Shown: positions 1-47,787 of the stretch, in pieces
Layout: each line of letters begins with the position of its first letter
Position numbering within the stretch: position 1 is the first letter of the stretch
Source: Cyanophora paradoxa CCMP329
Taxonomy: Eukaryota; Plantae; Glaucophyta
DNA length: 64,000 nt
Assembly (NCBI GenBank): GCA_004431415.1
Contig: QPMI01000106.1
Location: forward strand, 124,001 to 188,000
Reading direction: 5' to 3'
Made by a program: the position numbers and the translations under genes
The notes under the pieces: model-generated
Databases searched by the model: none
The model's input: the letters and a program-made list of their open reading frames with translations, nothing else
Told to the model about the DNA's origin: nothing

Positions 1-275
1 GTGTCGCCGCGGCGCTGCCAGGCTGCCCCTCGAGCTCGCTTTTGCGCACGGTCGCCGCGGTGCTTACCCCCGCTGGGCACGGTGGCGCACGCTGCTAGCG
101 CTGCGCTCGCTCCGCCCGGACAGAGCGTCACGGGAACGCACCTGCAGCTGGCCGGCCCGGCGGCGCCATATGCATGCTGGCGCAGCAGAGGGGGGCGAGC
201 TGCGCCAGGGTACGCGTTCGGCAAGGCAAGCGAGGCAGCCGCGTAGGTCGAACTTGAGCTTCCGGATCGGCAAGG

Positions 276-3744
<3,469 letters not shown>

Positions 3745-4303: not shown

Positions 4304-4903
4304 TCACGAGACGCCCATCGCCTCCATTAGCGCCGCCGTCGCCGCCTCGGCCGCCGCCCGCGCCTGCTTGCAGGCGGCCTTGTGCGTCGGCCAGTGCGCC
4401 CGCTGGCACTCCACCGCGCAGTACGAGACGGTTCTGCAGCCCGTGCACGCTTTGAGGGCGGCCGGCGCGGCCGGCGCCGGCTTCGCGCCCTCCGCTGCTG
4501 CCGCCGCCGCTGCCGCGCGCGTCGCGCAGGTCGGGTTGTCGCAGAGCGCCTGCGCCGGCCCCGCCGCTGGCGCCGCGGCCGAGGACCGCTCCGCGTGCTT
4601 CTCCTCCAGCGCAGCCTTCAGAAGGAGCCGCCGCGCCTCGCCGTCGCGCCCCGAGCCGATGAGCCCCGCCTTGGATGAGAAGTCGGGCCGCTCCTGAAAG
4701 TCCTCCTCCAACTTCCGCAGCGGCGCCACAGCGATCTTGGACATGAGCTTGTTCGCTTTGTTGTTGCTCGCGTCCATGCGCTTGCCCTCCTTGGCCTTCT
4801 TGTTCTTCCCCCGCTGCGCGCGCCACGCGATCAGGACGAATCGCGGGGAGTCCCTAGCGCGAGTAATCGCGGAAACAGGCTTAGCGGCGCGCCGTGGGTT
4901 CAT
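4304..4903 (-). CDS. MYND-type zinc finger protein
   Basis: Motif CDNPTC-(Ala-rich insert)[26 protein letters not shown] matches the MYND consensus. Start is uncertain (ATG at 4903 or 4777). Confidence 0.8.
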
Positions 4904-5604
4904 CGGGCGGCGCGCGGGATGCCGCCCGAGAGGCCGGGAATCCCGGCGCTCTGGGCCTCGGGCCTGGGGCAAGCGCGGGCGCGCGCACCTTCGACGTGTA
5001 CATCCCCGGGTCCCCCATCGCTCCTGCTGGTGCGCTGCGGTCGCGTTGCTTTCTAGATTGCTGCTTGCGGAGAGAGGTCGGAGGGCTGCGCGCAAACCGA
5101 CCGCTAGCTACAGCGCTGCGATTCAGCCACCACCGGCGCTAGGAAGCGAAAGCCTCTGCAGACTTGCCTCGCCGAGCACGTACCCTGGCACAGCTCGCCC
5201 CCCGCTCCTCGACCTCGCTTCCGGCTGTGTAGCGATCAGAGGCTTCAGAGCGCTCGGGTGACGCGCGGGTGCGTGTGTGTAAGCGAATGGCCTCTTCGGA
5301 GCTCGAGCGGCTGACGGACATTCTCCCCCGCGCAGCTTCGAAACGTAAACGCGGAGCGTGCCGTACGCGTGGAGGGCACGCGAAGGGCGCCTCACTGAGT
5401 CAAGCGCCTTCAAGTGCGTTCGCGCACCTCGGGGCCTCTGAGTTAGCGATCGAGCGCGGGCGGCCATGGCCAGCTGCGATCGAAAGCGCGGCTCGCTGCT
5501 GCAAGCTTAAGAGCGCAGCTGAGGGGCACGTCTAGCTGATATTATCAAGAGAGCGTGGTTCGCAAAAGCGCACGCGACGCTGACGATATTTTCGGCAGCT
5601 GCGC

Positions 5605-8600
5605 ATGCAGAAGCTTAAGAACTCGCACGGCCGCGGCCGCGGCCGCGACTCGCCTGAGTCGCCTCCCGCGGAACCGGGACGATGCATGAATGCATGGCGT
5701 TGTGTAGCTTCGTCCATTACAGCTCGTGCTCCCCCTTTCGCTGCGGCCGCGGCGGAACTCGCGGCGGCGCGCGATCGTGATTCAGATCCGTCCCGCGCTG
5801 TTCCCGCCCCTTCGCCAGAACCGACGCCAGAGCGGGCGCCCGCCATGGATAATGCAGCTGCTTCTCCGTCATCATCTCGGGTGAAGAAGAAACAGAAGGT
5901 GCGCACTCATTAAATTTCAGCCTTAGAAGCTTAAAGCTTAAGCTTGGCCGCCATCTTTCTCTCATTCGAATAAATATTCTTCTACAGGTTCATATCGGCA
6001 CGCTCGCGAGCCCACTGCCCGAAGTAAGCTGATTTCCGCTGCGGGCGCGCCTGCGAGCGGCGCCCTAGGCCTCATGCATATGATCGCTCCGCGCGCATAT
6101 GCATCAGGACGCAGCAAGTCCGGCACGCGCCTTGAGCTTTTTCGACGATGACGTGACGGGCGCGTGCGACGTGGCGCCGGCGCCGGCGGATCCCGACCCT
6201 TTGCCTCCCTCGCTCGAAGCTGACGGCGGTTCGAGCTTCAAAGTCGGGGCAGCGGTCCGGGCCCGTCCTTATATATTTAATTATGCAGGGGCCACGGGTC
6301 CCGGATCTTCAGATCGATGTGTGACTTCGAGCTCGCAGAGCGAATTCGAAGCATCCAAAGCCGCGGAGCCTTCGAATTTGGCGGCGATCGACATATCTCC
6401 GGTGACTGATCAGCCCTTCCCACCATCGGTCTGCATGCACTCGCACGCGGGGAAATCGCAATTGGCGCCGCGGAGTGCGCGCCTCTGATCGTGCCGCGCA
6501 GGGCGAGGCGTCCGGAGATCTAGATCTCGAGAGCTGGCGGGAGGCGGTCGCGCGGGACGCGTACGCGGATCCGGAGGAGGGGGGGCGGCCGCGGGTCGGC
6601 TCGGCCCTGCCGGCGGTCTCAACCTCTTCTTCGAGCAAGGGGGAGCTCGGGCTCGGGCTGGAGGAGGCTTCGGGGGACTTCGAATCGAAAGCAGAGGCCA
6701 CCTCGAGCTCGGGCATGGCCATGGTACCGGTTGTGAGCGACCCTTTGAATTCGGATCTTGAAATGAATTGCTCGAGGCCGTCCGAGCTGCTGCGTGCGTT
6801 TCGCTTTTTAAATTTCATGATCGTTTGCTCTAGATCTAGATCTTTTCTCTGCTGGCTCCGGGCCCAGGCCGCTCGCGCAGGGCTCCTCGGGACGCGCTGG
6901 AAGGACCTCGTGACGCCCCGGGTCCGAGCAAACCCGCCTATTATTATTACGGTTTCCGATTACGTATACGGTTCTATACGGTCTTACGTAATTCGAACCC
7001 TCTACGTATTATTTTACGATTTCCTCGCCGCGCCCGTTTACAAGCCCCGCGTCTCTTCAGGTTGACCCCGAGCTCTTCGAGAGGGTGTGGGCGGCAGTAA
7101 TGAACCTAAAGGCGCGTTCTACTCCACTCCTTTCCAATTGTAACCTTATTTGGTTTTTAATATGCGCTTTGTGATCATTTTCGTACCCAAACAGTGGGTG
7201 GCACCGCACGTCCACTGCATCGTTCGGGACTGCGATGCCGAGGTCGGTCCTCGTCAGGATCCGTATTTAACGGCCTTCACTTTGGCGGAAGAAAAGGTGA
7301 GCCTGTTGACGTTTATATTAAATTTACTCCAACCTCCAAATCAAAAGATTTTGATCACGACACATGTACTCTTGGGGTCTCCAGGTCATCTCACCCCTTC
7401 TCCCCTCGGTCAAGGATGCCCAGCGCTTTCGAGACCGCTGCAGAATCGCATGGTGCTGTGCTTTAATTTCTCTGTAAAATTACACATCATGATCAATGAA
7501 TTCGTTCTCATGCGAGACGACACTCATGCGTGCTCTAGGTTCGGACCGCAGGGGCCCCTGGAACGCGGCGAAACGCTTCCTCCCACCCTACTGCGGGGTA
7601 CAGCGTTTTCTGCTCTAGATCTCCACATGGATCTCTATTTTTCATCAAGCCCGACATGACCTCAAAAAATTGCGCATTGCCAGGCTACAAGGGCGAGTCT
7701 TTCTACAAGAAACTGTTCGAAACTCGGGACAAAGAGCGTCCCCAAATCGGCTACAACGACTCGAGGTGCTCCCTGGCGCTATCCTGTACCCCCACTAAAA
7801 CTTGCAAGCCCCGATGAGTCGGCGATGACGGTGCCGCAGGTGGCGGGAGGACGCGGCGGGGGCCGTGGCGCGGACCGTCGCGTTCGTCGCCGAGGAGACG
7901 GGGGCACTGGAGGTGCTCGAATTCGAAAATTCTTCGTCTCTGAACGTTTCAATCGGCATTGTTTTCTGAGGAGATGCAGGCGTGGTCTGCGTCGCTGGTG
8001 CCGAGCGAGTCTTTCTGCGGTCGAACACGAGACGAAGAAGATCTAGAAGGAAACAGAGCAGTGCACGTGGCAGCGGCTGTGGAGCAGGAGGAGTTCGAAT
8101 TCCGAGCTTCGAACTCGAGCTCTGCCTTAGTTCTGCTGCTGCCGTCTTCATCGGCGACTGTTCAGGCGCTATCGACGTCGGAGGCGCCGCAGGCACCTCT
8201 CCCCAGGCGTAACCCGCCTCGCCGCGCCCCCCACGTCTACCTCGCCTTCCCCCGCCCGCGGTCCTCTCGTCGGTCTACCGTCCATGGCCAAGTCGCGAGA
8301 CGCACCACAGCCGCCCTTCCGCTCTCATCCGTCCCAGCTCCAACTCCAGCAGACGGCGCGGTCATTCGCCCCAGCCCTCGGGATTCGCACGTGCAGTCTG
8401 GGCCGCCTTCCTTCCAGCACGCAGAGCCGCCCTCATCCATCTCAGCTCCGGATCCAGCAGACGGCGTGGTCATTCACCCCAGCCTGGGGGTCGCCGGTCG
8501 CTGCCCTGGGGCTTCGAATTCGCACGCGCAGCCTGGGCCGCCTCCCTTCGAGCACGCGGAGCAACTGCAGCACCCGCGTTCCGTCGCCCGCTTGACAATT

Positions 8601-11600
8601 GCAGGTCCGCCTTTATTCTGTTATATATCTTTCACGGTGGTCCCGTCCTTGCCGCTAGCTATATAGCGCTGCGCCAACGCTTGCAGCGGCAGGGGCACAG
8701 GTGAAGCCGGCTGATCACGATGATCATCGTCGCTCGCCATCGGCCATGGACACTTGTTCCTCAACTTCTGCGGCGCCGGCAGATGCTTCGGATCCTGCAG
8801 ACGATTGCAATGACATTTCGGTCTGTGTCTCTCACAAAACGGTCCGCTCCCGTCCCGATCCTCGAGCCCGGGTCGCTGCAACGCTGATGAGCACACGCGT
8901 ACGGCCAGACGGCGCCAAATGCAGAGCGATCGGCTGGGGAGGAGGCGCCTGGACTTGCAATTGAAGGGGGAAGATTAACGGAGGGGGGCGTGCATTTGAA
9001 CGCAGCAGTCTCGCTGCCTTCGTCGCTGCCTTCGGAAGAAAAAAGAGCCATGAGCCATGAGCAACGCGTACCAGAGCACAGCTGCAGCGCCAGCAACGAC
9101 GCCGACGGAAGGGGCGCCAGCGCCTCAAGTTCGAATTTTGGCGAGGAGTCCGCATTTCCGGCGGCAGCTGTTTTTGCGGAGGCCGCGTCGCCAGCTGCAG
9201 CTGCGGCGGCGGCGGCGGCGGGGAGCGAGCTCGAGCTCCAGGACGGCGTTTCGAACTCCGCGGGCGATCGCGAGGGGCCGCGGGCGTGGGATGTACACGA
9301 CTGCGTCCACTGCCGCCTCGACCGCAGCGGCCGGTTCTACGTCGAGTTTCCGTGGCGCGGGCATCGGTTCAGCGCGTACGGCTTCCAGTTCCGTCAGGTG
9401 CGATATCGATGCACAAATGCGAGCGATCGAAGTATAAAACGCGCATGCGCAGGAGGCGGCGCGGTATCGGGACCGCTGCATTCTGGCGGCGCAGTGGCTC
9501 GACCGGCGGGACGGGCGCGACGACGTGGGTGGGCCCTCCGACGCCGATCTCAGCTGCGACCGGCGCGAGTACGACGGCGATCCTCTCTTCAAGAGGCTGG
9601 AGGCGGCCGCGGAGGCCCTGGACGGAATCGACGGCAAGAATATCCTCGCGCTTTTTGAAGCCGTTAGAGCTCTGGTCCCGGTGGAGTACTACGACGGGCC
9701 AGTTGAAGTGCGTCCCTTTCTATAGCCTATAAGAATATTTAGGCCTTGCAATCGGGCTTGCAATATTTTTAATCGGCCGTGCCGTGCCATCCTAGGCCTG
9801 TTCTGATGGCGTGCAGGTACAGGCCGTCCATGATCATGCCCTCTCGTCTGCAGCTACCGTGCGTCGCGTCCTCCGCGCGCAGCTCCGTTTTCACTCTGCA
9901 GCAGGACGGTGGCGAAGTTGAGCCGGGGGTCGCGGATCCGGGGGCGAGCTCTGCGTGCGCCGCGCCTTCGGACCCTGCAGCTGGGCCTTCGGAGGCGGCG
10001 GCAGCTGCAGTGTGTACGGCACCTGCCGACTTTGCGGCGGATATCGCATGCCATTCGAAGGTACACATTCGCCTTACGTATGGCTTGCAATCGCGAGCGC
10101 TAGCGCTGATCATAACGGTCAATGCGGCCGGCCGGATCGCCCGAGAAGAGCCGAGAAGAGGCGATTGTGGGAGAGCTCGAGGCTGGCAATGCAGAAGCTT
10201 GTGGCGATCGTGAGAATGTCGACGAAACGATGGAAACGGAAAGGGAGATGGTGGGGGTAACGATGGATTCGCGCTTCGCAAAGGCGAAATTCCGCAGCCA
10301 TTTGAGGTGGCGGGGCTACCCTTGCTGGACTGGGTTCTTCCACTCCCGCGAGGCGAGCTCTCCCTTTTATTTACATCTTTAATTTACATCTCTTTTGACG
10401 GGGAAAGGGCAGGAGGCGGCGCGCTTCCGCGACCGGTGCATCCTCGTCTGCCACGAGCTCGACCGGCGCGATGGGCTCCACGGAGCTGCGAGGGCCCCCG
10501 CCAAGCTCAACTACGACGCGAGCGGTGCGATTTATACTTATAATTAATGCTAGAACACGATAGGGTCCCGAGATCTTTAGCTAGAGATTTGTTTCGAGGT
10601 TCATTTTCGATTCGCAGAGTACGCCGGAGAGCCGCTGTTCGAGGAAGTGCGGATGGGCCCGGGCGCCCTGGGGAGCTCGGCGTCCTTCACTGACTTCAAG
10701 GCCGTGCGGGATCTCGTGAGGAAGCACACGCGCGCGGCCGCGGGCGCCGGTGGCGCTCCGGATGATCCAGACGAGGCAGCAACGGGGGCAGCCGACGTCG
10801 ACGTGCTCCCGATTAGTTTCTCTTTTAATTTCGTCTTCACAGGACTTATAAATACGTGTACATTTTCAGGCTGCTTTAGATCTGCGTGCGCAGGCCACTC
10901 CCACAGATGCCGGTACAGCAGCGGCCCCTACGGTGTCTGATATCGGGAACGACGGCCACGGGAGCGGAGGAGGCCTAGGCGATCGGGAGCTCGAGCTTTC
11001 TCTTTCGCAAGCCAGCTGCAGGCCGACCCAGCTCCTTCGTGCGCGCACTTTCAGCTGTATCCGCCCCGTGCACGTGCATGCAACTAACAACGTCGACGAA
11101 CACAGGGTTCCTGAGCACTCACTGGCGGGTCTTGGTGACTCCTCCGGTGAGAAACAAATCCTTCGATTCCTGGCTAATTATGTATATATTCGCGGCCATC
11201 ACGGCCATGCACTGCGACGCTCATCTCGATCACACTCGCTATTCAGGTGGATCCAACAATTATCGAGAAGGTCTGGACACTCGTCACGAGCTCGAATGTA
11301 TGCGCCGCGCCCCGCCGCCCGCTCGTATTCCCTTACCATTTGGCCGCCTCAGGAAGAAACTCGTTACGTCTACCGCATTCCTGGACAAGGAGGCCACGTC
11401 GACGACGTCGTTGAAGCCATCTATGTGGCCGCATTCACTCTCGAGAACGAGAAGGTGCCATGATGCACGCAATTAATTTTATAAGATGAACGCGGTCCGT
11501 TACAATTGACTTCTAATCCTTGTTTCTCTTGAAGGTCGTCTCGCCACCGCTGCCGTCGTTCGAGGCGGCCCTCCGCTTCCGCGACCGCTGCCGCATCGCC

Positions 11601-14600
11601 TGGTCCGTCTCGCCTCGCCCGGCCCCGTCGGTTTCAAAGATATGCATCTAATCAATACGTTGATTTTTAAGATAAGCATCCTATCAATATATATAGAATT
11701 CCTAGTGCGGCCGTGTACACGTCCATTCTATCATTATAAACATTTCTTTCTCTAGTGCGCATGCATATGCGCAGCCGGCCGCAGAGCGCCAGTACCGCAG
11801 CCAGTTGTCGACGTCGCGCTGAGAGTGCGGCAGGTTCGGCTCGGATGGGCCTGGTGGGCCGAGGTACGAGCAGTTCGGCGACAGTCTCACGTTCCCGCTG
11901 CAAGGTACGCATACCTCTCTAAATTAAATCTCAAATCCTGAAGAGAATGTCTGAAGTTTCTTCTTGCAGAATACAAAGGCGATTCGTTCTACAAAAAGCT
12001 CTTTAGAGGACACGTCGCCCGGCGCGTCCGCGTCGGCGACAACGACCCGGCGTGCGTTTTGAATTCGAGCTTCTGCTCGAGCTCCGGATCCTTGCCGGCG
12101 GTCCAGAGTTTTGACAAAGCGGACGTAGGTGGCGGGAGGACGTGGCAGCGGCCGTGGCGCGGACCGTCGCGTTCGTCGCCGGGGAGACGGGAGCTACGGA
12201 TCCGGAGGTGCCCTTTCTTTTAAGATCTTATAAGATCAATAGAAGTGCTTAAAAGATTCTATAAGATCTTATAGAAGTGCTTGAATCTGCCACCGGGGAG
12301 ACGGGGGCCCTGGAGGCGCTGCAGGTGCCCTTTCTTTTAAGATCTTATAAGATCAATAGAAGTGCTTAAAAGATTCTATAAGATCTTATAGAAGTGCTTG
12401 AATCTGCCGCCGGGGAGACGGGGGCCCTGGAGGCGCTGCAGGTGCTCTCTCCGGACATTCTATAATAAGCTTTGCCTGGTTTATTGGCTTAATTTATAAG
12501 CTCTTATAGTCTCTTGTAGACTTTAATTAGAGGTGCCGCAGGTGCTCTGGATTTCTTCTGACATTGTTCTGCATTGTCATTCGGCTCCTTACGATCGCAA
12601 TTTCGCCTTGCACGGCAGACGCGAACTGGATCGCAACTGCTGCGAAAATGCGGCGTCCCACAAGATGCAAATGGTCAATCGCACATTGGCGAGAATTCGA
12701 ACTTCGAAGTCGTGATCAAGCAGGAAATCGAAGAAGAACACGAGAAGGAGGCTGCGTCCGCGGCACCGCTGGTTCCAGATGCAGCACCGCCAAACTCGCG
12801 ATCGGACCCGCAGCTGCAACAGCGGCTCCAACCACCGGCAGCTGATCCGACGGCGGCGCGGTCATCCCGCGCCCTTCGGTCGAAGGCGGCCGCTCAACAA
12901 AAGGTGACCGTGGAAGAGACGAAAGCGGCTTTCACTGAGCGAGAGGACCTGCGGGTGCGTACGCATACGCAATTAGACATGTACATGTGAACGTCCCTTT
13001 GTCTCCATCTGATTGCATTGGGCCGCGGCCGGCGACGGATCCGGATCCAGGGGGTCTCGGCATCTGTGGACATGCAAGGGCGCTTCAAGTGCAATTTGTC
13101 CTGGAGGCGGGCCGTGCGGTGGTTCACCGCGCCCGGTTCCCGCGAGGCAAGACTTCCTGCAGCTGCTTACTTTCTAGCTTTTTTTAGCTTCGCCGCCACT
13201 GCCTCGCTTTTGACGAGGGGAGGGCAGGAGGCGGCGCGCTTCCGCGACCGGTGCGTCCTCGTGTGCCACGAGCTCGACCGGCTGGAGGGTGCACAATTGG
13301 GCCCGAGGGAGGGATCCAAGCTCAACTACGACGCGAGCGGTGATTGCTTTGATTTGATTCGAATCCATGGCCAGCTAGCTCGTCTTAAATCGGCGGTTCT
13401 GCAGAGTACGACGGGGAGGCGCTGTTCGAGGAGGTGCGGCAGGGCGCCCTGGGCAACACGCGATCCCGCTCCGCACACGTGGTCTTCGAGGACGTGAAGA
13501 AGCTGGTGGCGAAGCACGGCGGCGGCGCCGCCCGCGCCGTCGCCGCCGCCGCCGGCCACGAGGGTGCACATGCTCAGGTGAGCGATGACGATATCGATCG
13601 CGGCCGCGCGCGAGCTCGAGCTTGCTATCGATGCGGCGCTCTGGCAGCAGCTGCTGACGTGCCTTTGACGTGACTGAGCCCTGCGCAGTCGACGTCGGTC
13701 CGCGCGCTGCTCGAGGCGGGCAGCCAGGGGGAGGCCCCCGCGGAGGCACCCGAGGCGGGCGCGGATGCGGAGCTGCCTGCGGCTGCGGATATCGATCGCG
13801 GCTGCGAGCTCACAATCGCGATCGAGGCGGCGGATCCGAACGAGGCGGCCGCAAGGCCACCGGTACTGGCAGAGGAGATGGATTCGAAGACCATCGAGCT
13901 CGAGGTGCGCCGATCGCGCTTTTTCCAGATGTGAAAGCTTAGAATTAGACATTACACGTTATTAAATTAGTCAGATCATGCATTCGGTCATGGAGTATGA
14001 TTAGCGATTGGCTCTGCATGTGAATGGACTTCTATTATTTAAATATAAATGGATTGATCATGAGCGGTATGCGCAGGAAACTGTGCAAAGAGCAATGCCA
14101 GCAGGCCGAACTGCGCGCCAACGGCGGAGCAACTCATCAGCAACCGACGAAGGAGATCAAGAACGACCCGCGCGGGCCGCAGCAAAGAAAATGGTGGTCC
14201 GTATGAGTACCCGCAATCGTCGTATCGTCATTTTCTAAGACGGCGGCCTGTACATGTCCAGGGAATTACTGCGTCTGAAGACAAGTGGGGGGATTTCGAG
14301 TGTTTCTTCGGCTGGCGGCGAGTCCAGTGGTGGGTCCACGGCTTTCACTCCCGCGAGGCGAGTCCTTTACTTTCATATACCAGCGCTAGCTATAGCGCTC
14401 TAGAAATCCCTCGCATAACGCTGGCGGGCTCGGGTGCCGGGGCACATGTACAGGAGGCAGCGCGCTTTCGGGACCGCTGCATCCTCTCCTGCCGGGAGCT
14501 CGACATGATGGAGGGGCGGGAGCCCGAAGGAAGGGGCGGGTCTCAGCTGAACTACGACGCGAGCGGTAAGGGGCTTACGACGTTGAATTTATAAGATGTG

Positions 14601-17584
14601 AACGTCGCAGCCCCCTCTTAGCGCCCTGCAGAGTACGCCGGGGAGGCGCTGTTCGAGGAAGTGCGGGGGGGCGCCTTGGGGAACACGCGCTCCCGCTCCG
14701 CGCAGGCGGTCTTTGAGGAAATGCGAGAGCTCGTTAGGAAACACAGCGGCAGCGTCGGGAGCTCCCCTGCAAAGAAGCCGAGGACCGCGCGCGCCAAGGT
14801 GCTCATTTCCTTCCAATTGCAAGTATTTTGTTGTCGCGGCTCTTTGTTTGTTCTTTCACGGCTTGCAGGCGGCACGGCCACGTCCGCGGCAGGAGGCTCC
14901 GGTGGACGCGTACGTTCAGGCGTGCTTCAAATTCGAGCACGGTCACGGCCACTGCGCCGCCTCCAACGCAGCGGCGCGGGGCGACAAGCCGCCGCGCCCT
15001 CGGAACGCGTTCCTTCTCTTTGCGGACGAGCGGCGCCAGGCGATTCGCGAGGAGCACCCCGGCCTCCCCTCCGTTAAGCACCAGAAGATGATGGCCAGCG
15101 AGTGGAACGCGATGACGGGCGAGCAGCGGCGGCCGTGGGCCGACCTCGCTACCCGCCTCCGCGAGGAATTCTTCAAGGCGTACCCGGAGTACAAGTACAC
15201 ATGCAAGCGCAAGCGGCCGCGGGAGTCGGGCGCGTCCGCCGCGGGCCCCTCCGCCCGTCCCCGCCGCTCCTCGGCCTCCAGTTCGGGATCGGAGCTCGAT
15301 CTCGAGCTCGCTGCCGAGCTCGAGGCGGCCGACGCTGCTGCCTCCTCGAGCTCGCCGCCTCCTGCCCCTTCTCGACCTCGCCGCGCCATCGCTGCGGCGT
15401 CCTTTGGCTTCGCACACTTCGACGAATTCGAAGACGACGACGTCGACGTAGACGAAGTCGACGGGGAGGAGGAGGGGGAGGGGGAGGGGGACCCCGAGTG
15501 GCGCCCGACCCCAGCCCCCTGGCCCGCGCGGCTCCCGTCCAGAGCCACGGCCGCGGCCGCGGCTGCCAGTCCGTGTCCGCCCCGCGGCCGCGCGCCGGCG
15601 CCGTCGGCTCCGGCTCCGGGCCCTGCAGCTGCCTCTGCTGCCTCTCTGGGGCGGGGGCCCTGCCCGTCCGGCGCCCCGCGGGCGGGGGCCGCGGCTGCCC
15701 GCCCGCCGGCGCCATCGGCTCCGGCTCCGGGCCCTGCCTCTGCCTCTGCTGCCTCTTTCGGGCGGGGGCCTGCCCTCGCCCTCGGCATTCCTGAGGAGGA
15801 CCAGCCGACGCCGCCAGCCAAGCAGCCCGCAGCTTTTCTACCGCCAGATCTAGATGAGCGATTCACATTCCAAGTCCAGCCCCCGGCATTCGAGCAGACG
15901 GCGGTGGAGCCGCGTCGTGCGTCGCCGCCAGTTGCGCGTGCGGTAGGAGCCATGGACACCTGGCACTTCGACGTCGGCGTCGACCAGCAGCAGCTGCAGG
16001 ATGCGACGGATCCGGAGCAGCCGTCGTTCGAGCAGCTAGCTATGGAAGAGGAAGCGGGCCCTGCAGCTGCAGCAGCTGATCACGAGGGCCCGAGCCGGCT
16101 GCCGCCGCTGTTTTTTGAGGATCAGCCTCCGCCTCCGCCGTTCGCCAGTGCCTTCGTCTCCGGCTTCGCTGCCCTTCCGCCGCCAACGCTGACGCCGCCG
16201 GCACCGGCGCCGTCGCCCGGTGCGACGCCAGCCGCGAGGATTCGGCATCGATCGCAAGGATTAGGCATCGCTTGTATCGCTGACCTGCCCCGCCCCGCCC
16301 GTCCGTCCCCTGCAGAGGCCCCAGGCCTAGGCCCCGCGGGTTTGCGCCCTCGTTCTTTGGTTTTGGATCTGCTGCCCACGTGCACGGCTCACCCGTCCCC
16401 TGCAGTGGCGCCGGGCCCCGCGGCGCCGGGCGGCGCGGCGGCGCCGGCGCCGTGGCCGGAGCCCGGGGCGGTGCTGGGCTGGCCGCCCCCCGCCGCCCTC
16501 GCCTGGCTCCACCAGAAGTGCCTCCTCTCCGACCCCGACGCCCAGCGCGAGTGCGCCCGCCGCCGCCGCCGCCGCCGCCTTCAGACTTCATCTGTGTCAG
16601 CTTTCTTTAGAGGCTCTTTGATCAAAGCTTTTATTAGAAGCTTCTCTGCCTGGTACTGCGTGAAATGTCGCGCCCGCAGGCTGCAGTGCCTGCGGCGGCT
16701 GGCGCTGAACGGGCGGGCGCTGCTGATGCACCCGGCCGAGGCGCTGCGGGGCCGGCTGCTGGCGAAGCAGCGGGCGCTGTACCCGGGCGCCGGCAGCGAC
16801 CTGAGCGACCAGCTCGAGGCGGTCCTCTTCTCGCTCGACCACGAGGTCCGCGATTTAAATTTACATGTGCCTTGTTTGGTTTAAATCATAATGAGATCGA
16901 GAGGCGCGCAAGAAAACGTTTTGAGAATATTGAATAACACCTTCGAAATTCTATGTTAAGATGTGAAAGATGCGCATGCGTGAATTCGTTAATTCTATGT
17001 CAAAGATGGGCTGCGCACGCGTGAATTCGAATCCTTGATATAAAAATAAACTCCGACGCGGAGGCCTACCGCTAGTTGCTGTGCGCCCCGGGCCCGGGCC
17101 CCGCTCTCAATTCTTTGTTAAATTATATAAAGATGGGCTGCTTGAATCCTTAATATCAAACCAAAGCTTGATGAGGACGCCTAGCGGTAGTTGCTGCATC
17201 TGTGCGCCCCGGGCCCGGGCCCCGCCCTCAATTCGCCTCCGCAGGTGGCGCTGCTTGTCGACGACGCCACGCGGCGGTACGTATACGGACAGCGCCCCTA
17301 TTTCCTGTATTGAAAATAAAATAAAAGCCTCTATATATCTGAAATATATATCGGGCCCCTCTATATATCTAACTCTTCTCCTTTCTCCATCACTCTTTAG
17401 CTTCCGCCTACTTTAGCTAGGTCCCTCTATCTAGAGCTTCCGCCTTTAAAACTCTAAAATCAGAGCGCGCGCCCTCCTCACGATCACTCTTGTTTTCAGG
17501 TGCGGGGACGCCGCGGTCGCCGCCGAGATCCAGCGGCTCTTCGAGGCCTCGATCCGCTGCGGCCGCCCCCGTCTGAACCCGTAG
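5605..17584 (+). CDS. Large multi-exon putative transcription factor with six AP2-like repeats and an HMG box (one gene or a tandem pair)
   Basis: Spliced repeats read e.g. VGVTMDSRFAKAKFRSHLRWRGYPCWTGFFHSRE|EAARFRDRCILVCHELD..G..AKLNYDAS|EY, resembling AP2 GV..GKW.A.I....WLGTF.T.EEAARAYD.AA....G..AKLNF. HMG box at about 14985-15219. Last exon ends ..FEASIRCGRPRLNP* at 17584. The exon chain was not traced end to end. Confidence 0.7.
7190..7915 (+). other. Divergent AP2-like repeat, type B copy 1
   Basis: Exons read YLTAFTLAEEK|..LPSVKDAQRFRDRCRIAW|..|YKGESFYKKLF..|WREDAAGAVARTVAFVAEETG. Homologous to 11350-12210 and shares the RFRDRC core with the type A repeats. Confidence 0.55.
9290..9708 (+). 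other. AP2-like repeat, type A copy 1
   Basis: GRFYVEFPWRGHRFSAYGFQFRQ|EAARYRDRCILAAQWLDRRDG...DLSCDRREYDGDPLF. Confidence 0.65.
10248..10730 (+). other. AP2-like repeat, type A copy 2
   Basis: MVGVTMDSRFAKAKFRSHLRWRGYPCWTGFFHSRE|EAARFRDRCILVCHELDRRDG..AKLNYDAS|EYAGEPLFEEV; GC donor at 10353. Confidence 0.75.
11350..12210 (+). other. Divergent AP2-like repeat, type B copy 2
   Basis: IYVAAFTLENEK|..LPSFEAALRFRDRCRIAW|..|EYKGDSFYKKLF..|WREDVAAAVARTVAFVAGETG. Confidence 0.55.
12206..12445. repeat. ~117 bp tandem duplication of an exon end plus AT-rich intron
   Basis: aggtgccctttcttttaagatcttataagatcaatagaagtgc...ggggagacgggggccctggaggcgctgc occurs twice, almost identically. Confidence 0.85.
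13050..13520 (+). other. AP2-like repeat, type A copy 3
   Basis: GVSASVDMQGRFKCNLSWRRAVRWFTAPGSRE|EAARFRDRCVLVCHELD..SKLNYDAS|EYDGEALFEEV; GC donor at 13147. Confidence 0.75.
14260..14745 (+). other. AP2-like repeat, type A copy 4
   Basis: GITASEDKWGDFECFFGWRRVQWWVHGFHSRE|EAARFRDRCILSCRELD..SQLNYDAS|EYAGEALFEEV; GC donor at 14358. Confidence 0.75.
14985..15219 (+). other. HMG-box domain, sequence-specific (SOX/MATA-like) class
   Basis: KPPRPRNAFLLFADERRQAIREEHPGL..KMMASEWNAMTGEQRRPWADLATRLREEFFKAYPEYKYTCKRKR carries the RP.NAF and YP.YKY-basic signatures. Confidence 0.92.
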
Positions 17585-17853
17585 GCCTAGTTATAGGCCC
17601 GAGCTCTGCGTGCGTCCGATTTCTGCCCGTCCGCTTTGACACGCGCTCATGTTCGGCTTTGAATATTGAACGGCATGCGCAGCATGCACAGCGATGACCC
17701 GCGCCCCCCGATCAGACTCAATTTGGCCCCTCTTCCATCTCCTTCTTCCCCCTCCAGCTCAAAAGCCCAATCCTCATTGCAATTGAATGCAATTCAATAA
17801 AACCACACCTATGCAACTTCTATTCGCAACGCAAGATGTTTTTAGCCTGGGAT

Positions 17854-20800
17854 TTAACTGAAAGTGACGTGGACATTCGTAGGCTGGGCTGTCGAAGTCG
17901 TAGGCTGGGCTGCTGCAGTTGGCGCCGCCCCATGGCCATGCCCTTCGAACCGAACGCTTGTAGCTTGAGGTTTGCCCTGGTTTGCTGTGATTGGTACCGG
18001 CCCCGGTCGCGCCGAGGCCGCAGCTGGCCACGGCAGGGTGTGGTTCGGACTGCGCTCCGGCAAGCGAGAGATGTCGACGCTCTGGAGGTAGTGCTTCGAA
18101 TTCGCGGCCAGCGATCCGATCGCAATCTGGGTCGCCGGCGGCGGCGCCTCCTTCGCACTTGAGCTCGCGTTATTCAGCCGCGGCGGCTCGCGATCGCTGG
18201 CGCCTGCGCGCGCATACGTATACGCCGGTCTCCCGCTTTGCTCCCGAGGAGTCGTCCCGCGTATACGCGCTGCAGCTGCAGCTGCAGCTGGCTTGACGGT
18301 CTGTTGTTCGCCCCAGGAATTGCGATCGCCGTCTTCGTCCCCGTAGGCGTCGGGCCGGCGGTCATTTGCCGCAGTCGACGTCGATGGAGTCGACCGCTGG
18401 TTCGAGTTACAAACCCGATTTAAAACGAAAACAAGCTTTAGAAAGCAAAAAGCCTCGAAAGGGCTTACGTTGAGCACGAGGCGGTTGAACGTCAGATAGG
18501 CCGCGATGAAAAGTCCGACGACCTGAATGGCGCCCTGTGCATAACGTCCATATCAGACCAAGCAGACATTGAAGAGAAGTCAAGTTTGCCGCAGTGCAAA
18601 ACGCATGCGCACCTGTGCAAGAGAAATGGCGTCCGCAATTGCGTCGAGTACCGTTGTGCGCGTGATGCGATCCACTAACAAATAAACCTGCGCATTTTCT
18701 AGATTTAGAATCGAGCACTCGAAGAAAGCTTAATTCTGCTTGCGCGCCTGGCTTGGCTTGAATTTGGCGCGGAGCATTACTCTCGCCTCGGCACAGGTAT
18801 CCACGGCGCGCCCGGGCGGACACACGACCTGTTAGAGACGCATCGCGATTTGCAAGTTCGGCGCTAGCGTAAACGCAATCCCGCCGCGCAGACGGGGTAG
18901 GGCGCACGAAGCTGGAGGCGTCGCGCTCAGCCTTCTCCGTCTCAGAGGACGTAACGGCCGCGAAGTAGCGCGGGCGGCCATCCGCGGGGTCCGTAAAATG
19001 CATGGCTGCACAGGAAGCGCACTTTGAATTTAGCGCATCTCGAGAACGGGGCCGAGCGGAAGCACGCATGCGCACGGGTGAGATCGATTGACACATCGAC
19101 GGCGTCACGGCCGCGGAAGACGGAATTCTCCGATGACGTCGTTATCATTCCCTGCACGTCGATGTACTCTGGGATCTGCGTTCGAGTCCAGCGCAAAATA
19201 AGCTCGTAGAGGTGGCGAAGAATAAAACGATTGACGCGCTTGGATGGAGTACGGGATCGAGACGGCTAATGCGCGCGACGCTTTCAACTGCAGCGACACA
19301 TATGTCCCGTCGGTTGCTGCAATCCTGCACAGGCCTTTCAGAGAGAAGGAAACCTCGCAAAGAAACGCTTTAAGAAAGAAAGCAGAGAAGATCTAGAAGT
19401 CTACCTGCACTGAGAGCATGTCCATGTGACTCTACACGAGCGGGCGCCGTCGACGCGCTCGAAACCCACGCTGTCGGGCCCGACGAAGCCCGATCGCTCG
19501 TGCACGATGCCGACCGTGTCACAAGGGCCATCGTATCCTCGGAACGTGGCGCTAACGACGAAAACACCCGAGATCGAGCTTGCAGACGGACTCGCTCCAG
19601 GATTCTGCGCTCACGGTTATATATATAACCTCTTCGCAACTCTGCATATATATGCGCATCTTGAACGTATACGAACCAGCGACTGAACGATCTGCAATAT
19701 TCAATGCAATTCCAATTCGAAAAAACGTACAGTTCCGTTTAGCAACCTGAACTTGCATAACAGAGTGATCATGCGAATGTGAGTCACGCACGGTGTAGTT
19801 TGCCATGATATACTGAACGATTACAAATAGAACTGCAAGCTCGAATGAATCTTGCCCTTACCAGCTTGCGAAAACGAACGATATATAGGACACTCACTCG
19901 CTACAATGGCACCCGCGATGGCGACCACCGTGAAGAACGAACCGCGCACGGACCGCTTCGAATTCTCCTCCGAGTCGGCGTCAGGCGCGACTTCGAAGTT
20001 TTCTTTTGTTGCGCCTTTCGCCTCGAGCTCGCCATCGCAACTTGAATCGTGGACGAGTTCCTCTGCAGCGATGTTATAATATTAAAGCGCATAAAGATTA
20101 CAGCTGCATGCGCATGCGCCTGTGTATATCCGGTGAAGCCACCGAAGGCGTTGCAGGCGCTCTTGCTTTGTAGCCGGGGTAGAGGGAATGACGCGCAGGT
20201 ACACGACGAAGCATGTACCGACCAGCAGCACAGCGATCCCCGCGGCGACACCGATCCACATGAACACCTGAAAATGCAGTATTTATGCGTGAACGACGTC
20301 GCTGAGTCGGCATGCTAATTATAAAATGCATCGCAGCAACGGCGCACGCGGAATGCACTGTCGACACTTGCTTGCTCCGTCTTGATGACAGCCTGGGAGA
20401 TTGTTCCCGTGTTCTGGGGGTATCGATACTCTTCGCTCTTCTTCTCGATCTCGCTCGAGCTCTCTTGATCGACTCCGCTCCCCGTCTGCAGGATCCGGCG
20501 CGCCCACAGCCAAAGCAGGCGCCGTTTCGAGGACGATGTGATCGCAGGTGCGGCGCGCTCGAGGCGGAGGCCCATATCAATCGGCTCCGACGTGGCTGCA
20601 CGCATGAAAGGGCGTTTTTGATTAGAGAACGGCGCGGGTTCAAGAGCAGAAGAACTTCGGAAGCATGGGCAGAGCCGACCGACTGGACAGAGCATGCCGG
20701 CGGGGCAAGGCAGGCAGGTCGTTCCTCCCGTGCCGCGGAAGTACGTCCCAAAAGGACTGACGAAGCGCAGCAACGCGCACAGTCAGGACACGGCACGGCA

Positions 20801-23800
20801 GCGCATCGCTTATTTAATGAAGAGTAATTGAGCTAGAGATCACCATGGCATGCACTCCAGCAACGTCGCGTCGCGGTACGTACCGCTCTCGCATGGGCGG
20901 CACTCCAAGCCGTCCTCTGATACCGTTCCCAAGCTGCACGCGGTGCACGCGGCGGACTCCGCAGTCGAGATTTGGTTGATGGGGCATCTAAGACAGCGAC
21001 CACTACCGGCCGGAGAATACTGCCCCGCAGCGCAGGCGATCTGCAATCCGCGATCCAAAGAACAAAAACGCATCCAGTAAATATTTAATGTTGGCTGTAC
21101 ACAAAAAGCATCACGCACGCATTCAGTCCGCTCATCATTAGCGATAGTACCAGCAGGACACAGCTACAAATACGCAACGTCAGAGTTCCTTTCAAGCACC
21201 GAACGCAAAGCCTTTGCGCTTGCCTTGCATGCAGCCATCCCGACTTGAGGCGCCGTAGAATTGGAGTGGCACAGCTGGCACGTCAATTTCGACTCATCGG
21301 GCACTTTTCCAGCAGGACAGGCTGCGATCGATGCGGGATATTATTTCAATGCAATGCGATGAAGGGCGCAATGAAAGGAAACCGCTGACATATGCATGCG
21401 ATCCTGTCTTCCCGGGAAATCGCTCCAGACGCGCTGCGCATGCGCATTTTGCAAAATTAGTAGCCGCAATTTTCACAACAATAAGCAACGAGAGCGCGTG
21501 CACCATGCCGTGCAGTTTGCGCTGCCATATTTATCAACGAATGTGCCGGGCTCGCAGAGTTGGCACGTGTGCATAGTTGAGTTGCGGAACAAGCCCTGCA
21601 GCAGCAGCGTTCAGCACTACGTATACGACTGCCCACTGGGCCAACAGACGGATGACTAGTACTGTGGAGGCGCACGGGGCTGCAGGGATCACAGGCGGAG
21701 AAGTCTGCGCGAGAGTACATGCCGGCGCTGCACGGAATGCACGCTTCGCCACGCCCTAGCTCCTCGGAATACGTATTCGGAGGGCACTGCGACAACGTTG
21801 CGTATTCAAAGCCGTGCACGTGTGCACGTCCATGGCCACCCACGCTGTACCTGCTCGCAAGACTTGCCGTTGCGGGGCATAAACGTGCCGCGCTCACAGG
21901 GGATGCATTTCGAGCTGGATGCGGAAACTCACTCATGATCCCGACCACAAAAGGACAAAAATTGCTTTATCGCAAAATCGCACCCGTCGGAGGCGGCGTA
22001 CTGGCCGAGGGGGCACGAGGGGCACTCCTTAAATGTCTTCGGCGGAGAAACAAAGCCCTGTCGATCACGGTTGGCGTGCAGTTGGAAAGGATTCTCGTGC
22101 ACGCTATATAAGAGTTTAGTACCGGCTGGCACGGAAAGCAGTTGTTTTGGCCATCGGGCTGGTAGGTGCCAGCTGCGAGAATTCAGTCCCACGCGACCTG
22201 GACAGCTATCGCTGCGTAGGCGTAGCGAGTACCCGGGCAGTCGACACAGCGGGTCTGGTCGGCGTTGGTGATCTGCCCCTTCTCGCACTCTTGGCACTCG
22301 ACCATGCCGAGAGAAGCGCTGACTTGTCCCTGCGCATGTACGTAGACGTTTGCAAAAAAAAAAAGCTTCCGGCAAGCGTCTAAGAGCGTCCCGCAAGCTT
22401 AATTAATTACAAGCTAGAAGTAAATAGTACTTGAGAAGGCTCATGTGATCAGCGGCCTCAGCAACGCACGTTTGGACAAGGCCAACAAGTCCCGTTGCGC
22501 TCGAACGAGCCCGAAAGACAAGGCCTGTACGTGTGAACTGCTCAGCGCACTGTGACACGTGCGAAATCGCGATTACTGCTGGTCTAGCAACAAACCTGCA
22601 CTCGGTGCGGTCGTCACTGCTTGCGCTCCCGCGTTCACTGGGAGGGCGCGTTACTGTAGCGGATGCGCAATGTAACAGCGCGAAAATATTGTTTTACCAG
22701 CGCAAGCATGAGTCGGCCCCGGCAGCGGGCGTGTAGTATCCGAATGGGCACTGCAAAAGACGTTTTATGAAGACTTCGCGAGCCTTCACTAGGTATAGGT
22801 GGCAATCTTACCAAGCCGCAGGTCTGATTAAATTGAGAGCGGTACGTTCCTTGCGGACATGGCTGTTTGAAAGAGAGTTTTGCGATCCGTTAGAGGCCGC
22901 TCGCAATGAAATACGAAGCCATTCGAAATGGGAATCGAACCGCGCAGTTCTGTCGATCCATAGAAGCGATTGTGCCGGCGGGGCATGCGACGCACTCTAT
23001 TGCGCCGGCTTCGGGGGTGACCGTGTTCATAGGGCACTCCACGCAAGTGCCGTCCTTGGCGTAGAATCCCGCTCGGCACGGCTCGCAGGACTGCAGATCC
23101 AACTAAATAAACGCCAACTTGCGGAATGAACGCGTGGTTTCTAACTTATATTTAATTACGCACTGTTCTTTCAACAGTGGATATGGTCCCGGTGCGACAA
23201 GGCGTGCAAGCGGCTGCTCCACCGCCGCTGCTGTACGATCCAAACGGACAAACGGCACATTCGCTCATGTTCTTGGCTCGGAACTTTCCTGCTAAGCAGC
23301 TGCGAAATGTAAAGGCTCTCACCATGGTCCAGCATAGCAGACAATACTGCGCAGCAAATAGAAGCGCACGGGAAGCAGTTTTGTTTGTCTTCGCTGGCGA
23401 CAAATCCCTCGCCACTGAATTTTACCACAACGTTATAATAACGAACTCGTGGAAATTCAAATCAGGATCATGATCAGGGCGAAGCGCACCATTCGACGCA
23501 AACTTGAGCGCGCTCGTAGGGGTTGTACGTGTTTCCGGTGCACGGCTTGCAGGTTCCATTCCGCTCGTAGTTGCCTTTCCCGCACGCCACGCAGGCAGAA
23601 AGGTCCACGCTCTGGACAGAGCCCGCTCCGCAAAACTCGTACGAATCGCTGCCCTCGCGAGCAATCGCCCCAGCGGGTACGTTGGCGCAAAGCAACATGC
23701 TCGAATTGCGGTACGTCCCTACGAGCCTGGTTTAAACGTAGAATGGAACAACCTATAGCTAGCTCATGCAATTGAATCTCACCAGATCTGCAAGGGATGC

Positions 23801-26800
23801 AGGTCTGCAAATCTGCACTTGCCGTATATCCGGGAGAGCACGCAGTGCACGATTCCATTCCCTCATCGGACGCGACGGAATTCAGCGGACAACTGCATTA
23901 TAATTAATATTAGCGCGTCGCGCGAATCGGGTCAGTGCCGACGCCTCCACGAATCGACAACACGATTGCACTGACCGCTCGCAGGCGATGCCATTTGGGG
24001 CTAGAAAGGTTCCTTTCGGGCTGTAGAGTTTTGTTTCAGTCTTGCTGAAGCGAGCAATTGCTCTAAAATGCAAAGAAAACAAAGGATGACCATTTCGTGC
24101 AGGCAACAGCAGCTCCTGCAGACACTCTGCCCGGCCCGCATGCTTTGCATTCCTCAGTTCCGAGCGCGCCTGCATTGAAAATGATTGCACTTCTTAGTAA
24201 TCCATTACAGCTTCGCGCACCGGCGACCGAATACGTCATTGGAGGGCACGGGGAGCATGTCAATGCTCCAGGATATGGCAAGAAGTATCCCGCAGCACAG
24301 GCTGCGCGCGCGGCGAGGGCGAGTGCGATCAATCCAAACTACCGATAAATCCGTACATGAGAGATCGACGTCAGGGTCACGAACGCTTGCAGTCCGAGCT
24401 CCATCCTGGGGACTCCGTGTACGTGTTATTCGGGCAGACCGTGCACGGCTGAGTCGGAGACTTCGAGAACGTCCCTTGTTCGCATACTGATCGACGTCGC
24501 GAGTTCAGATTATGATGCATAAATCCATACTGGAGAAAATGATGATATCGCAATATGCGCACAAAAACACGAGTCCGATCCAGGTTTGCTGTAGCTGCCT
24601 TTCTCACACCATGTGCCTGTTCAGTTAACCATAAGCGTAAGCTTGTTCTTGGACGCAGGGCTTAAATCAAAGCTCGCGCACAGTTGAGGCTCCCGGGCTT
24701 GGAAAATGTCCCTCCGGGGCACAATTCCGCCTCGCTTTCATGCAGGAGGCCCCGCTTGGAACTCGCTCGACCTGAGATTACGTATGCAGACAACGCGTGA
24801 ATAGAAAACGTTGCCAACGGTCTATATCAGGATTTAATAAAACTTCGTTCCGCAACCTGCAGGAAGTAGCAAGCAGTCCTCCCCATCGCCTCCGCCATTC
24901 AAAGAAGGGTAGTTATAGTGCTACGAGCGATCAAATCAGATGCAGATGGGCAGAGACCATTAAACGACATAAAGCTTGCCTGGCCAGCAGGGCATTCCAC
25001 ATATAGTTTAATTATGCGAGCTCTGCTTGATGCATGATCGGTGATCAAATGATCATATGCATGCATGATCAATCGCTGCAGTTCTAAAAGCGCGCACGGC
25101 GTTTGAGTGTAAAAGACGATGTATGATGTCTCCGGGAGCGGGTTGTCGATCACGAATTCCATTTTCATAGATTGTTCAATTCGACTGAAGATCCTGGCGC
25201 CGGCAACAAAAGCATTTAACTCGCGCCCGCGACAATTTCGTTACCCGAACTGCATTTTAGCATATACGTTGGGGTAACGATTACCAATTCGAATTTATTA
25301 TGGGCGTTCCTCCTCTGTTGCGCATAGACTTTGCATGAGGTTGAAGAAGAATGAATAAATAGTTTATCCTCATGCTCACGCGATCATTGACGGAAAGTTC
25401 GACTCTGAGAGCGCAATCACGACTTTCTTTTCGCTGAAACCTGCCTCATCGTCGACATTCTCAATCTGCAAACATGTCATTACACATGTACACGAGACAT
25501 CAATATTAAGAATACACTTTTAAAAGAACAGTCGTTCTTTCGCGGGACCTGTAGATATTCTTTCGAAGTCGTGATCTCATGTCGCTCTTAAAGTTCTTCA
25601 CAACGGCCTGGAACATGGTAATCGTATCTTCCCATGAATGCCTGTGCGCAATTTTACTTCATTAAGAGCATGTGCTGACAACCTGAATATCGAGTTACCC
25701 TTCCCGCACAATATACAAAGTTCCTGTCGGAATGCATATGTACTCATGAGTTCGAGGAGTGGAATGCATTATGTCTGAAGGCAAAAAATACCGGATCTGT
25801 ACACCGCCGCAGGGATGCTGTACCACTCGAAATCCGAAATATTGAAAACACTGGAAACTTTTCCCACAATGTATGATCCGTCTTCGGTTTCGGTACTATA
25901 ATTTGGATCCCAGCCGTATTTATCCGAGACTGGAAGCCGCAAGTGATCGGTTGGGCGAGGCGCAGCCCCTCCCATGCCGCTTTGAAACTGTGAAGGACGA
26001 CTGGGCGATAGTTCAACATATCATGATTGACTGGCAATGTTTGATGATTAAATCTTTCGAATTCGTACCGCATTCGTATGACCTGCGCGAATTTAAATCG
26101 AACCGTGCCCGGATTTTGCGGGGGATCGGACCTCATCGCCGAGAATAAAGAACGCAAACTTGCGACCCTCCACCCATTTTCCTTCAAGCGCCTGGAGTAC
26201 AAGTTACAAGACCAAACAAATACCAGCTACAGTACTAGTGCTTCCTCATGACCCAGATCTAGACCGCACCCCTATGCCGGATCCGGCCTCTCCAGTGAAC
26301 CCATTTTGAAGAATGTGAGAGTCCCAAGCTCGTATGGTGCGTTCAGTTATCTTGATTGGAGCACGGGCCGGGGCGACAACGGATGATCCAGGAGCTACGT
26401 CCCAGGTCCATACGAATATCGCGTGCTTGTACACAGCACTGGGGCCATCCGGTGGGTCTTCTGGAAAGAATGGAAGTCTGACATGAAAATATTCTGTAAG
26501 CACTCTTATGGAATAGTGATATCCTATAGTTAACGTTATCACGAAGGAAGCTTTAGGACCTCACGACGGCGTGATATGTAGTAGTCCGAAAATTGTCGGT
26601 CGTGCTTCCATCAGCCGCCATCGCGAGAACCGCAGCGCCTGGAGGGAGATCTAATGCCCTCACCCCGGCCTTCGAATTCGGATCTGATCTGCGCAAGCAA
26701 CCGTAAATCGGAGCTCAGTAAGATAATTATATAATTAGGTGGCTACTAGGCTAGATATAGTCGCGAACGAACCCCCAAACCTGTTCTTTAAAAAACCCGG

Positions 26801-47558: not shown

Positions 47559-47787
47559 CCTAGCTGATCCGGAAGCTCTCATGATCAGGTTCGACATGCC
47601 CCGCGCGCCGCACTCAGGCTCCCCGAACGCGTACCCCGGCACAGCTCGCCCCGGGAGTCGCCCAGTCCGCCCCAAGTGGCCCAGGAGTCGCCCAGGAGTT
47701 GACCCGCTCAATAGCTAGCTTGCAGCGACGCAAAGCAAGCTCGTACGTGCCCAGGGAATCTCATCGGTCGGCCGCGAGCTGGACCCG

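Follow-up and report, generated by a model that had tools for sequence, protein, structure and literature searches.

A candidate Cyanophora paradoxa gene combining six diverged AP2-like modules, an HMG box and a probable SAM-type tail

The ApiAP2 factors are large proteins of low complexity that contain several diverged AP2 domains, and the ETS proteins TEL and Yan are transcription factors that bear a SAM domain. The helix of a canonical AP2 domain carries the motif E-x-A-A-x-x-Y-D followed by L-N-F. This motif can also be drawn from work on WRINKLED1 (WRI1), whose first AP2 domain is clamped by two linker helices through D115-Y135 (PMC9401623). LEAFY consists of a DNA-binding domain and a SAM-type oligomerisation domain, and its SAM oligomerisation was shown to raise avidity at weak or clustered sites (PMC4844672); SAMD1 is likewise reported to combine a DNA-binding domain with a SAM-type domain (PMC11969672). 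Gene regulation in glaucophytes is almost undescribed, and the terms 'AP2', 'HMG' and 'transcription factor' do not occur in the C. paradoxa genome paper. Here we describe a locus on C. paradoxa tig00000430, in a window of 64 kb (the whole stretch of DNA that was analysed), whose predicted gene combines an AP2-type fold (major groove) with an HMG box (minor groove) and a probable SAM domain. A preliminary description of this DNA had not recognised the combination of AP2 and HMG; neither this pair nor the three domains together were found in the proteins or literature that we searched, the latter covering few subscription journals.

Gene model, transcription and surroundings of the locus

A gene model was built by walking GT/GC-AG splice sites by coordinate, giving a product of about 2,550 aa; splicing of a further in-frame intron, 16220-16405, which the public model g613 implies, would shorten it to 2,488 aa. 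The model uses 36 GT and 4 GC donors, and all of its acceptors are AG (Table 1). Database queries consisted of individual exons, uninterrupted in-frame segments, aligned homologous exons or public protein entries, and the spliced model served for the frame check, the repeat alignments, the tree, a self-comparison and a window scan. Cores of the A.R(F/Y)RDRC type were located at 7424 (B1), 9462 (A1), 10422 (A2), 11574 (B2), 13237 (A3) and 14463 (A4), placing the six repeats where the preliminary description had seen them. The repeats and the HMG box fit one open frame. A six-frame profile scan revealed no seventh core elsewhere within the 64-kb window. The module order reads as B-A'-A-B-A-A, and the basic stretch that closes exon 1 is a possible nuclear signal.

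Table 1. Features of the gene model, in positions of the 64-kb window
Feature	Position	Strand	Remarks
Whole gene model	5605..17584	+	41 exons, ATG 5605 to TAG 17584; 2,550 aa in a single open frame
N-terminal low-complexity region, exons 1-4	5605..6793	+	Predicted; least certain part of the model
Module B1	6769..7912	+	8 exons; sheet acidic (net -3); AP2-like core plus N-terminal extension and helical tail
Module A1 (subtype A')	9302..9689	+	Basic sheet (+3); public model g612
Module A2	10254..10730	+	Basic sheet (+5); GC-AG intron 10353-10412 RNA-confirmed
Module B2	11014..12207	+	Acidic sheet (-4); RNA contigs confirm four internal introns and the 411-nt intron after the module
Module A3	13051..13517	+	One 96-nt exon of phase 0-0 (13051-13146) encodes the sheet, which is basic (+4)
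Module A4	14262..14744	+	One 96-nt exon of phase 0-0 (14262-14357) encodes the sheet (net -1); GC-AG intron RNA-confirmed
Intron joining the repeats in frame to the HMG box	14799..14868	+	70 nt; donor 9.3 bits, acceptor 7.5 bits; used by g613
HMG box	about 14983..15210	+	Intact, intronless; leans SOX/TCF/MATA; basic tail after it
Acidic, Pro/Ala-rich linker	15211..16461	+	About 417 aa; same open frame as HMG box and tail
C-terminal helical domain	16462..17581	+	Family-conserved; first half SAM-like; introns 16551-16679, 16846-17244, 17277-17499

Ten introns of the model were seen as joints in RNA-labelled contigs from four runs, compared over 9300-15290 (the RNA label of these runs is a guess). 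They include the introns with the three GC donors of A2-A4 and the 411-nt intron 12208-12618; exon 21 was joined into B2, and B2 to A3 by way of overlapping contigs from different runs. Contig depth over the gene was low (about 2-5) and patchy. The gene is weakly transcribed and spliced, with splicing observed in its middle part, and the joins from B1 to A1, from A3 to A4 and from the last repeat to the HMG exon are predictions of the gene model. At 11553-11604 and 12131-12200, contigs of depth 10-42 matched B2 with 1-5 mismatches and a different middle; these are B-type paralogs, expressed more strongly and with a nearly identical last-helix exon.

The public annotation divides the locus into g612, which is A1 alone, and g613, which starts at A2. 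On this basis two or three adjacent family genes might be present, for example B1 and A1 as separate genes and A2-B2-A3-A4-HMG-tail as one, in which case the array would be partly an artefact of joining. The weak acceptor scores of introns 12, 13 and 17 (1.0, 0.4 and -0.7), the 384-aa linker between B1 and A1 and the dense gene packing in the C. paradoxa genome (PMC6704402) would agree with such a split. However, g613 is itself wrong on B2 and A4, omitting half of the former and most of the latter, whose introns are RNA-confirmed, and the genome paper states that its own gene models need curation; the public models are unreliable at this locus. In addition, one RNA contig begins at 10145, upstream of the g613 start, with 10 unaligned letters, as a splice from 10060 to 10149 would give, and the paralog model g623 has B, linker and A' within one gene. 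We consider separate genes fairly unlikely, and the combination of AP2-like, HMG and SAM-like parts would hold even then.

Other features were observed around and within the gene. A minus-strand ORF with a MYND zinc finger (4304-5095; Pfam E = 8e-11) lies head-to-head with the repeat gene, with about 500 bp between them. An aldehyde/P5C-dehydrogenase-like gene, read from ORFs, occupies 1-3500 on the plus strand and has an inverted partial copy at about 45300-47700 on the minus strand, and at about 17800-25200, also on the minus strand, lies a gene rich in introns that encodes numerous Cys-rich repeats (C-x-x-C-P-x-G type). Inside the 411-nt intron after B2 are two near-identical 117-bp tandem copies (12206-12439), each ending in an exon-end-like stretch and a donor resembling the end of B1; the RNA contigs skip both. 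Short tandem duplications occur in the low-complexity coding linkers at 8319-8562 (spacing of about 108-135 bp) and 15588-15775 (111 bp).

Structure, history and selection of the repeat modules

The A modules are about 107 aa long, with pairwise identities of 35-64%. The B modules, which have an extra N-terminal segment, are about 170 aa; B1 and B2 are 51% identical over 167 aa and share 7 intron positions. The likeness among the A repeats and between the two B repeats is beyond chance. Two introns are common to A2-A4. One, of phase 0 with GC-AG sites, precedes the helix (10353-10412, 13147-13227 and 14358-14453; all three RNA joints), and the other, of phase 1, precedes the E-Y motif (10525-10617, 13340-13404 and 14566-14631; the second RNA-confirmed). 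A1 has an intron at the first position (9398-9452), with a GT instead of a GC donor, and none before the E-Y motif. B1 and B2, too, have a phase-1 intron just before the conserved extension Tyr, and the sharing of this intron with A2-A4 points to descent of A and B from one genomic ancestor. The shared intron positions bear out the proposal that duplication of modules at the genomic level produced the repeats.

In a tree of 34 modules, A2-A4 formed a gene-specific clade (99/94), A1 clustered with paralog modules (96/91) and the B modules formed one clade across paralogs (100/100). The more specific proposal that a B-A-A triplet was duplicated is rejected, since the A1+A3 clade that it requires fails (p-AU = 2.4e-7). 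A masked self-comparison revealed no mutual homology among the linkers. Synonymous divergence between A2 and A3 was 3/19.8 sites in the helix and extension compared with 14.5/21.8 in the strands (Fisher P = 0.001), and between B1 and B2 it was 1/16.7 in the last-helix exon compared with 54/80 elsewhere. This patchiness may reflect gene conversion of scaffold exons. The helix conservation reported earlier is strong, but part of it is patchy homogenisation, because the synonymous sites there are homogenised too.

The A3 module of g613 was folded by AlphaFold with an alignment of 31 natural modules, yielding a model with a pLDDT of 87.4 and a pTM of 0.82. In this model a short first strand and two long strands form a three-stranded antiparallel sheet packed on a 21-residue helix, which is followed by a short and a long helix. 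The top 7 Foldseek rows were AP2 domains of TEM1 and WRI1 (E 0.16-0.87). A wide VIA search gave WRI1 a Z of 6.6 (rmsd 3.3, 83 aligned, residues 62-158) and TEM1 a Z of 5.6, with the next row at 4.1; PfSIP2 was absent from the top 50 of the VIA search. The top Atlas match was a chlorophyte AP2 cluster (TM 0.61, 97 residues aligned). AP2 domains ranked first in three of the four structure libraries (pdb, pdb_via_wide and atlas), and the viral library returned weak rows only. Each of these scores is modest, with no Foldseek E below 0.16 and no Z reaching 8, and all derive from the single A3 model; the agreement across libraries supports an AP2-derived fold, in line with the AP2-like nature proposed in the preliminary description. 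The low confidence of a two-sequence read-through fold (pLDDT 53) led us to set it and its fold search aside, and an Atlas feature search with the A3 read-through gave nothing informative.

Pfam AP2 (PF00847) did not match any exon, read-through, public model or any of the 31 family modules at E values up to 10. PDB sequence searches with the repeats or profiles returned nothing relevant, and the profile did not match the AP2-like stretch of phage T5 hegJ, a weak test on one sequence. The evidence supports modules that are AP2-like in fold yet fail the profile test for AP2 membership. Of the canonical helix signature, E, A, D and L-N-F/Y are kept and Tyr is replaced by Arg throughout the family. 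The six modules lack a basic first strand of the Y-R-G-V type, having 0-2 K/R in the first 9 sheet residues; in the paralogs this stretch has up to 5 K/R, and several modules keep a G-V/I plus basic motif.

The sole invariant residue in the 31-module alignment is the helix Asp, and the extension Tyr is near-invariant. Both appear to sit where D115 and Y135 are in WRI1. From this conservation and from the WRI1 match over 62-158, which spans the linker helices, we infer that the extension corresponds to that clamp. The likeness of the modules to AP2 plus the WRI1/TEM1 clamp suggests that the clamp could predate green plants. Double-AP2 proteins of the euAP2/ANT/WRI1 kind have a short, conserved two-helix linker; the modules described here have a clamp-like extension but stand 64-384 aa apart.

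Linkers between successive modules are of low complexity and measure 384, 108, 64, 112 and 131 aa. Three of the six sheets are net acidic (A4, B1 and B2; Table 1); the basic sheets of A1-A3 resemble most paralog A modules, and the sheets of paralog B modules carry net charges between -2 and +2. The dN/dS of the strand exons was 0.63, 0.74 and 0.30 in three pairs (32 codons each, with low power and near saturation), and that of helix plus extension was 0.26-0.29. Inward strand positions are conserved (entropy 0.8-2.7 bits) and outward positions variable (3.3-3.9 bits), most of all in strand 2 (Y/E/P in A1, R/H/R in A2, K/N/S in A3 and E/F/G in A4).

The preliminary description had likened the repeats to a zinc-finger array. 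In its full form this would be a programmable array of B-A-A triplet origin in which each repeat reads successive bases and the strands are under diversifying selection. The outward strand 2 differences, the symmetrical 96-nt exon that carries the whole sheet in A3 and A4 and the homogenisation of helix exons but not strand exons are all in its favour. Against this, the triplet duplication is rejected, the linkers are long and variable (64-384 aa), half of the sheets are acidic and strand dN/dS is below 1 in all three pairs (0.30-0.74), which also weighs against a diversification of the strands by selection; we judge such an array to be most improbable. The data appear to fit independent binding of short sites by some modules rather than a contiguous zinc-finger-like code.

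It is also conceivable that the repeats are no longer DNA readers, being relaxed or protein-binding, with the HMG box as the sole working DNA-binding domain. Their weak first-strand basic motif compared with the paralogs, the net acidity of A4, B1 and B2, the family-wide change of helix Tyr to Arg and a strand dN/dS of 0.3-0.7, compatible with relaxed constraint, would all suit this. Yet the sheets of A1-A3 remain at +3 to +5 like most paralog modules, the inward strand positions are conserved while the outward ones vary, and the paralog models have no other detectable DNA-binding domain, which makes a general loss of DNA reading unlikely.

The HMG box, the tail and the paralog family

Pfam HMG_box matched the box after the repeats over positions 1-69 of 69 (E = 1.1e-14; 55.1 bits against a cutoff of 25.4), confirming it as complete. 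The best single-box PDB matches were SOX17 (E = 2e-12, 50.4 bits) and SOX2, reaching through the Y-K-Y tail and basic residues; HMGB1 scored within 3 bits of SOX17 (E = 1.6e-11, 47.6 bits). The box is likely of the SOX/MATA type, as first assigned: SOX17 ranks on top and the Y-K-Y and basic tail are present, but HMGB1 is nearly level. A word-based homolog search with the HMG region, limited to 0.55-1.75 times its length, returned only itself. Pfam scans of 7 paralog models detected neither an HMG box nor any other DNA-binding domain. An intronless box in a gene with a median exon of 112 nt, absent from the 7 paralog models scanned, suggests an insertion from another gene.

A single open frame runs through the HMG box and into the beginning of the tail. 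No ATG precedes the box within it, so both need an exon upstream, the nearest of which is that of A4. Intron 14799-14868 would make this join, and g613 likewise connects the repeats to the HMG box through it. Its sites score above the 95th percentile of exonic GT/AG and are among the strongest of the gene, and it is AT-rich like the neighbouring introns. The sole listed RNA contig over it (X24, 14680-14892, depth 2.5) is unspliced, and no RNA contig covered 14900-15099. Retention of the intron leads to a stop at 15075; if it were usual, the main product would be a repeats-only protein of 1,988 aa, and the HMG box and SAM-like tail would belong to a minor or regulated isoform. The unspliced contig and the stop agree with this possibility, but a single contig of depth 2.5 may be pre-mRNA or DNA, the splice sites are strong, and the HMG box and tail downstream are intact. 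We therefore regard usual retention as highly improbable.

Five paralogs have a C-terminus that matched the last 120 aa of the product (E = 3e-29 to 1e-9). Because this tail here follows the HMG box in one frame, the box sits inside a family gene, and its enclosure by family-specific parts is the strongest argument that it belongs to the repeat gene. Pfam SAM did not match the tail, and the PDB matches were sub-threshold (aveugle E = 0.49, STIM1 E = 1.2), with W-x-x-x-x-V-L-x-W and T-G-R-x-L-L aligned; the Atlas feature score was 0.88, and 9 of 10 matches were in the SAM clan. The tail is probably a SAM-type self-association domain. A duplicated stretch of about 90 bp (17029-17234; 78% identical) was also observed inside the 399-nt tail intron.

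A profile of the four helix exons was searched against 1.84 billion cluster representatives. This analysis revealed 14 proteins, two of which are the public models of the same locus, g612 and g613. The other 12 comprise seven that were looked up and are C. paradoxa models, four more with the same module, and one (P0005) that was rejected as a spurious repetitive match. No relatives were found in viral contigs, metagenome contigs or by phage tblastn. Word-based homolog searches gave no match to the A3 read-through and, with the repeats, only self and g623; such blanks carry little weight because only 0.55-1.75-fold lengths were seen. Within the collections searched, the family looks confined to C. 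paradoxa; being invisible to Pfam, it is missed by transcription-factor counts. The same tail closes five of the 11 paralog models, and subtype A' is common to A1 and the paralogs g623, g3628 and g16974. Of these, g623 (P0007) also lies on tig00000430, outside the window and ten gene numbers away, and has the order B-B-A'-B, with its second B module grouping weakly with B1 (86/85).

Proposed function and comparison with known systems

Our preferred reading, to which we give a probability of roughly 0.55, is that one gene encodes a nuclear, multivalent DNA or chromatin binder of about 2,500 aa, from a Cyanophora-specific family, with six AP2-like modules, an HMG box and a SAM-like tail. The family plan would be a diverged AP2 domain with a V-shaped helical clamp, repeated n times, plus the SAM-like tail. 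The HMG-bearing member would have gained its intronless box within the linker that precedes the tail, and triplication of one module in it would have given A2-A4. The HMG box may serve as a sequence-preferring minor-groove anchor that bends DNA, and the basic modules A1-A3, tethered by long, flexible linkers, could each recognise short sites in the major groove independently of one another, like separate ApiAP2 domains; the acidic B modules, and perhaps A4, may be structural or protein-binding. Oligomerisation of copies through the SAM-like tail could add avidity at weak or clustered sites, as in LEAFY. The most likely output would be transcriptional regulation, possibly repression.

A broader and distinctly doubtful reading is that of a Cyanophora kit, in which AP2-derived readers stand on a SAM-polymerising scaffold, sheet cassettes diversify, scaffold exons are gene-converted and members add domains, the HMG box in this case. 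If it were true, such proteins could direct the silencing of repeats or endogenous viruses, as KRAB zinc-finger proteins do in mammals.

The gene is a variant of the multi-AP2 regulators within an undescribed alga-specific family. Repeat 1 of WRI1 with its linker (PDB 7WQ5) and the TEM1/RAV AP2 domain (PDB 7ET4, 7ET5) resemble the A3 model in having an antiparallel sheet of three strands, a helix packed on it and further helices after that. In contrast to these, the Cyanophora modules (13-24% identical) lack a Pfam AP2 match, have Arg for the helix Tyr and a longer loop after the helix, and each has its own putative clamp; six of them are strung on linkers of 64-384 aa instead of two being packed together, with HMG and SAM-like domains attached. 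Apicomplexan ApiAP2 proteins are likewise large, low-complexity and multi-domain, and the Cyanophora gene differs from them in sequence family, HMG box, SAM-like tail and its six modules. SOX17, SOX2 and Capicua are single-HMG-box regulators, whereas the box described here has Leu where SOX17 has Met and lies within an AP2-like protein of 2,500 aa. The plan of LEAFY, SAMD1 and TEL/Yan, a DNA-binding domain with a SAM domain, is alike, although the DNA-binding folds are unrelated and the Cyanophora SAM domain is putative. The paralogs g16974, g20792, g2412, g4332, g623, g3628 and g1808 likewise have A, A' and B modules, and the HMG-bearing gene is set apart from them by A2-A4 and by its HMG box, found in 0/7 of the paralog models scanned.
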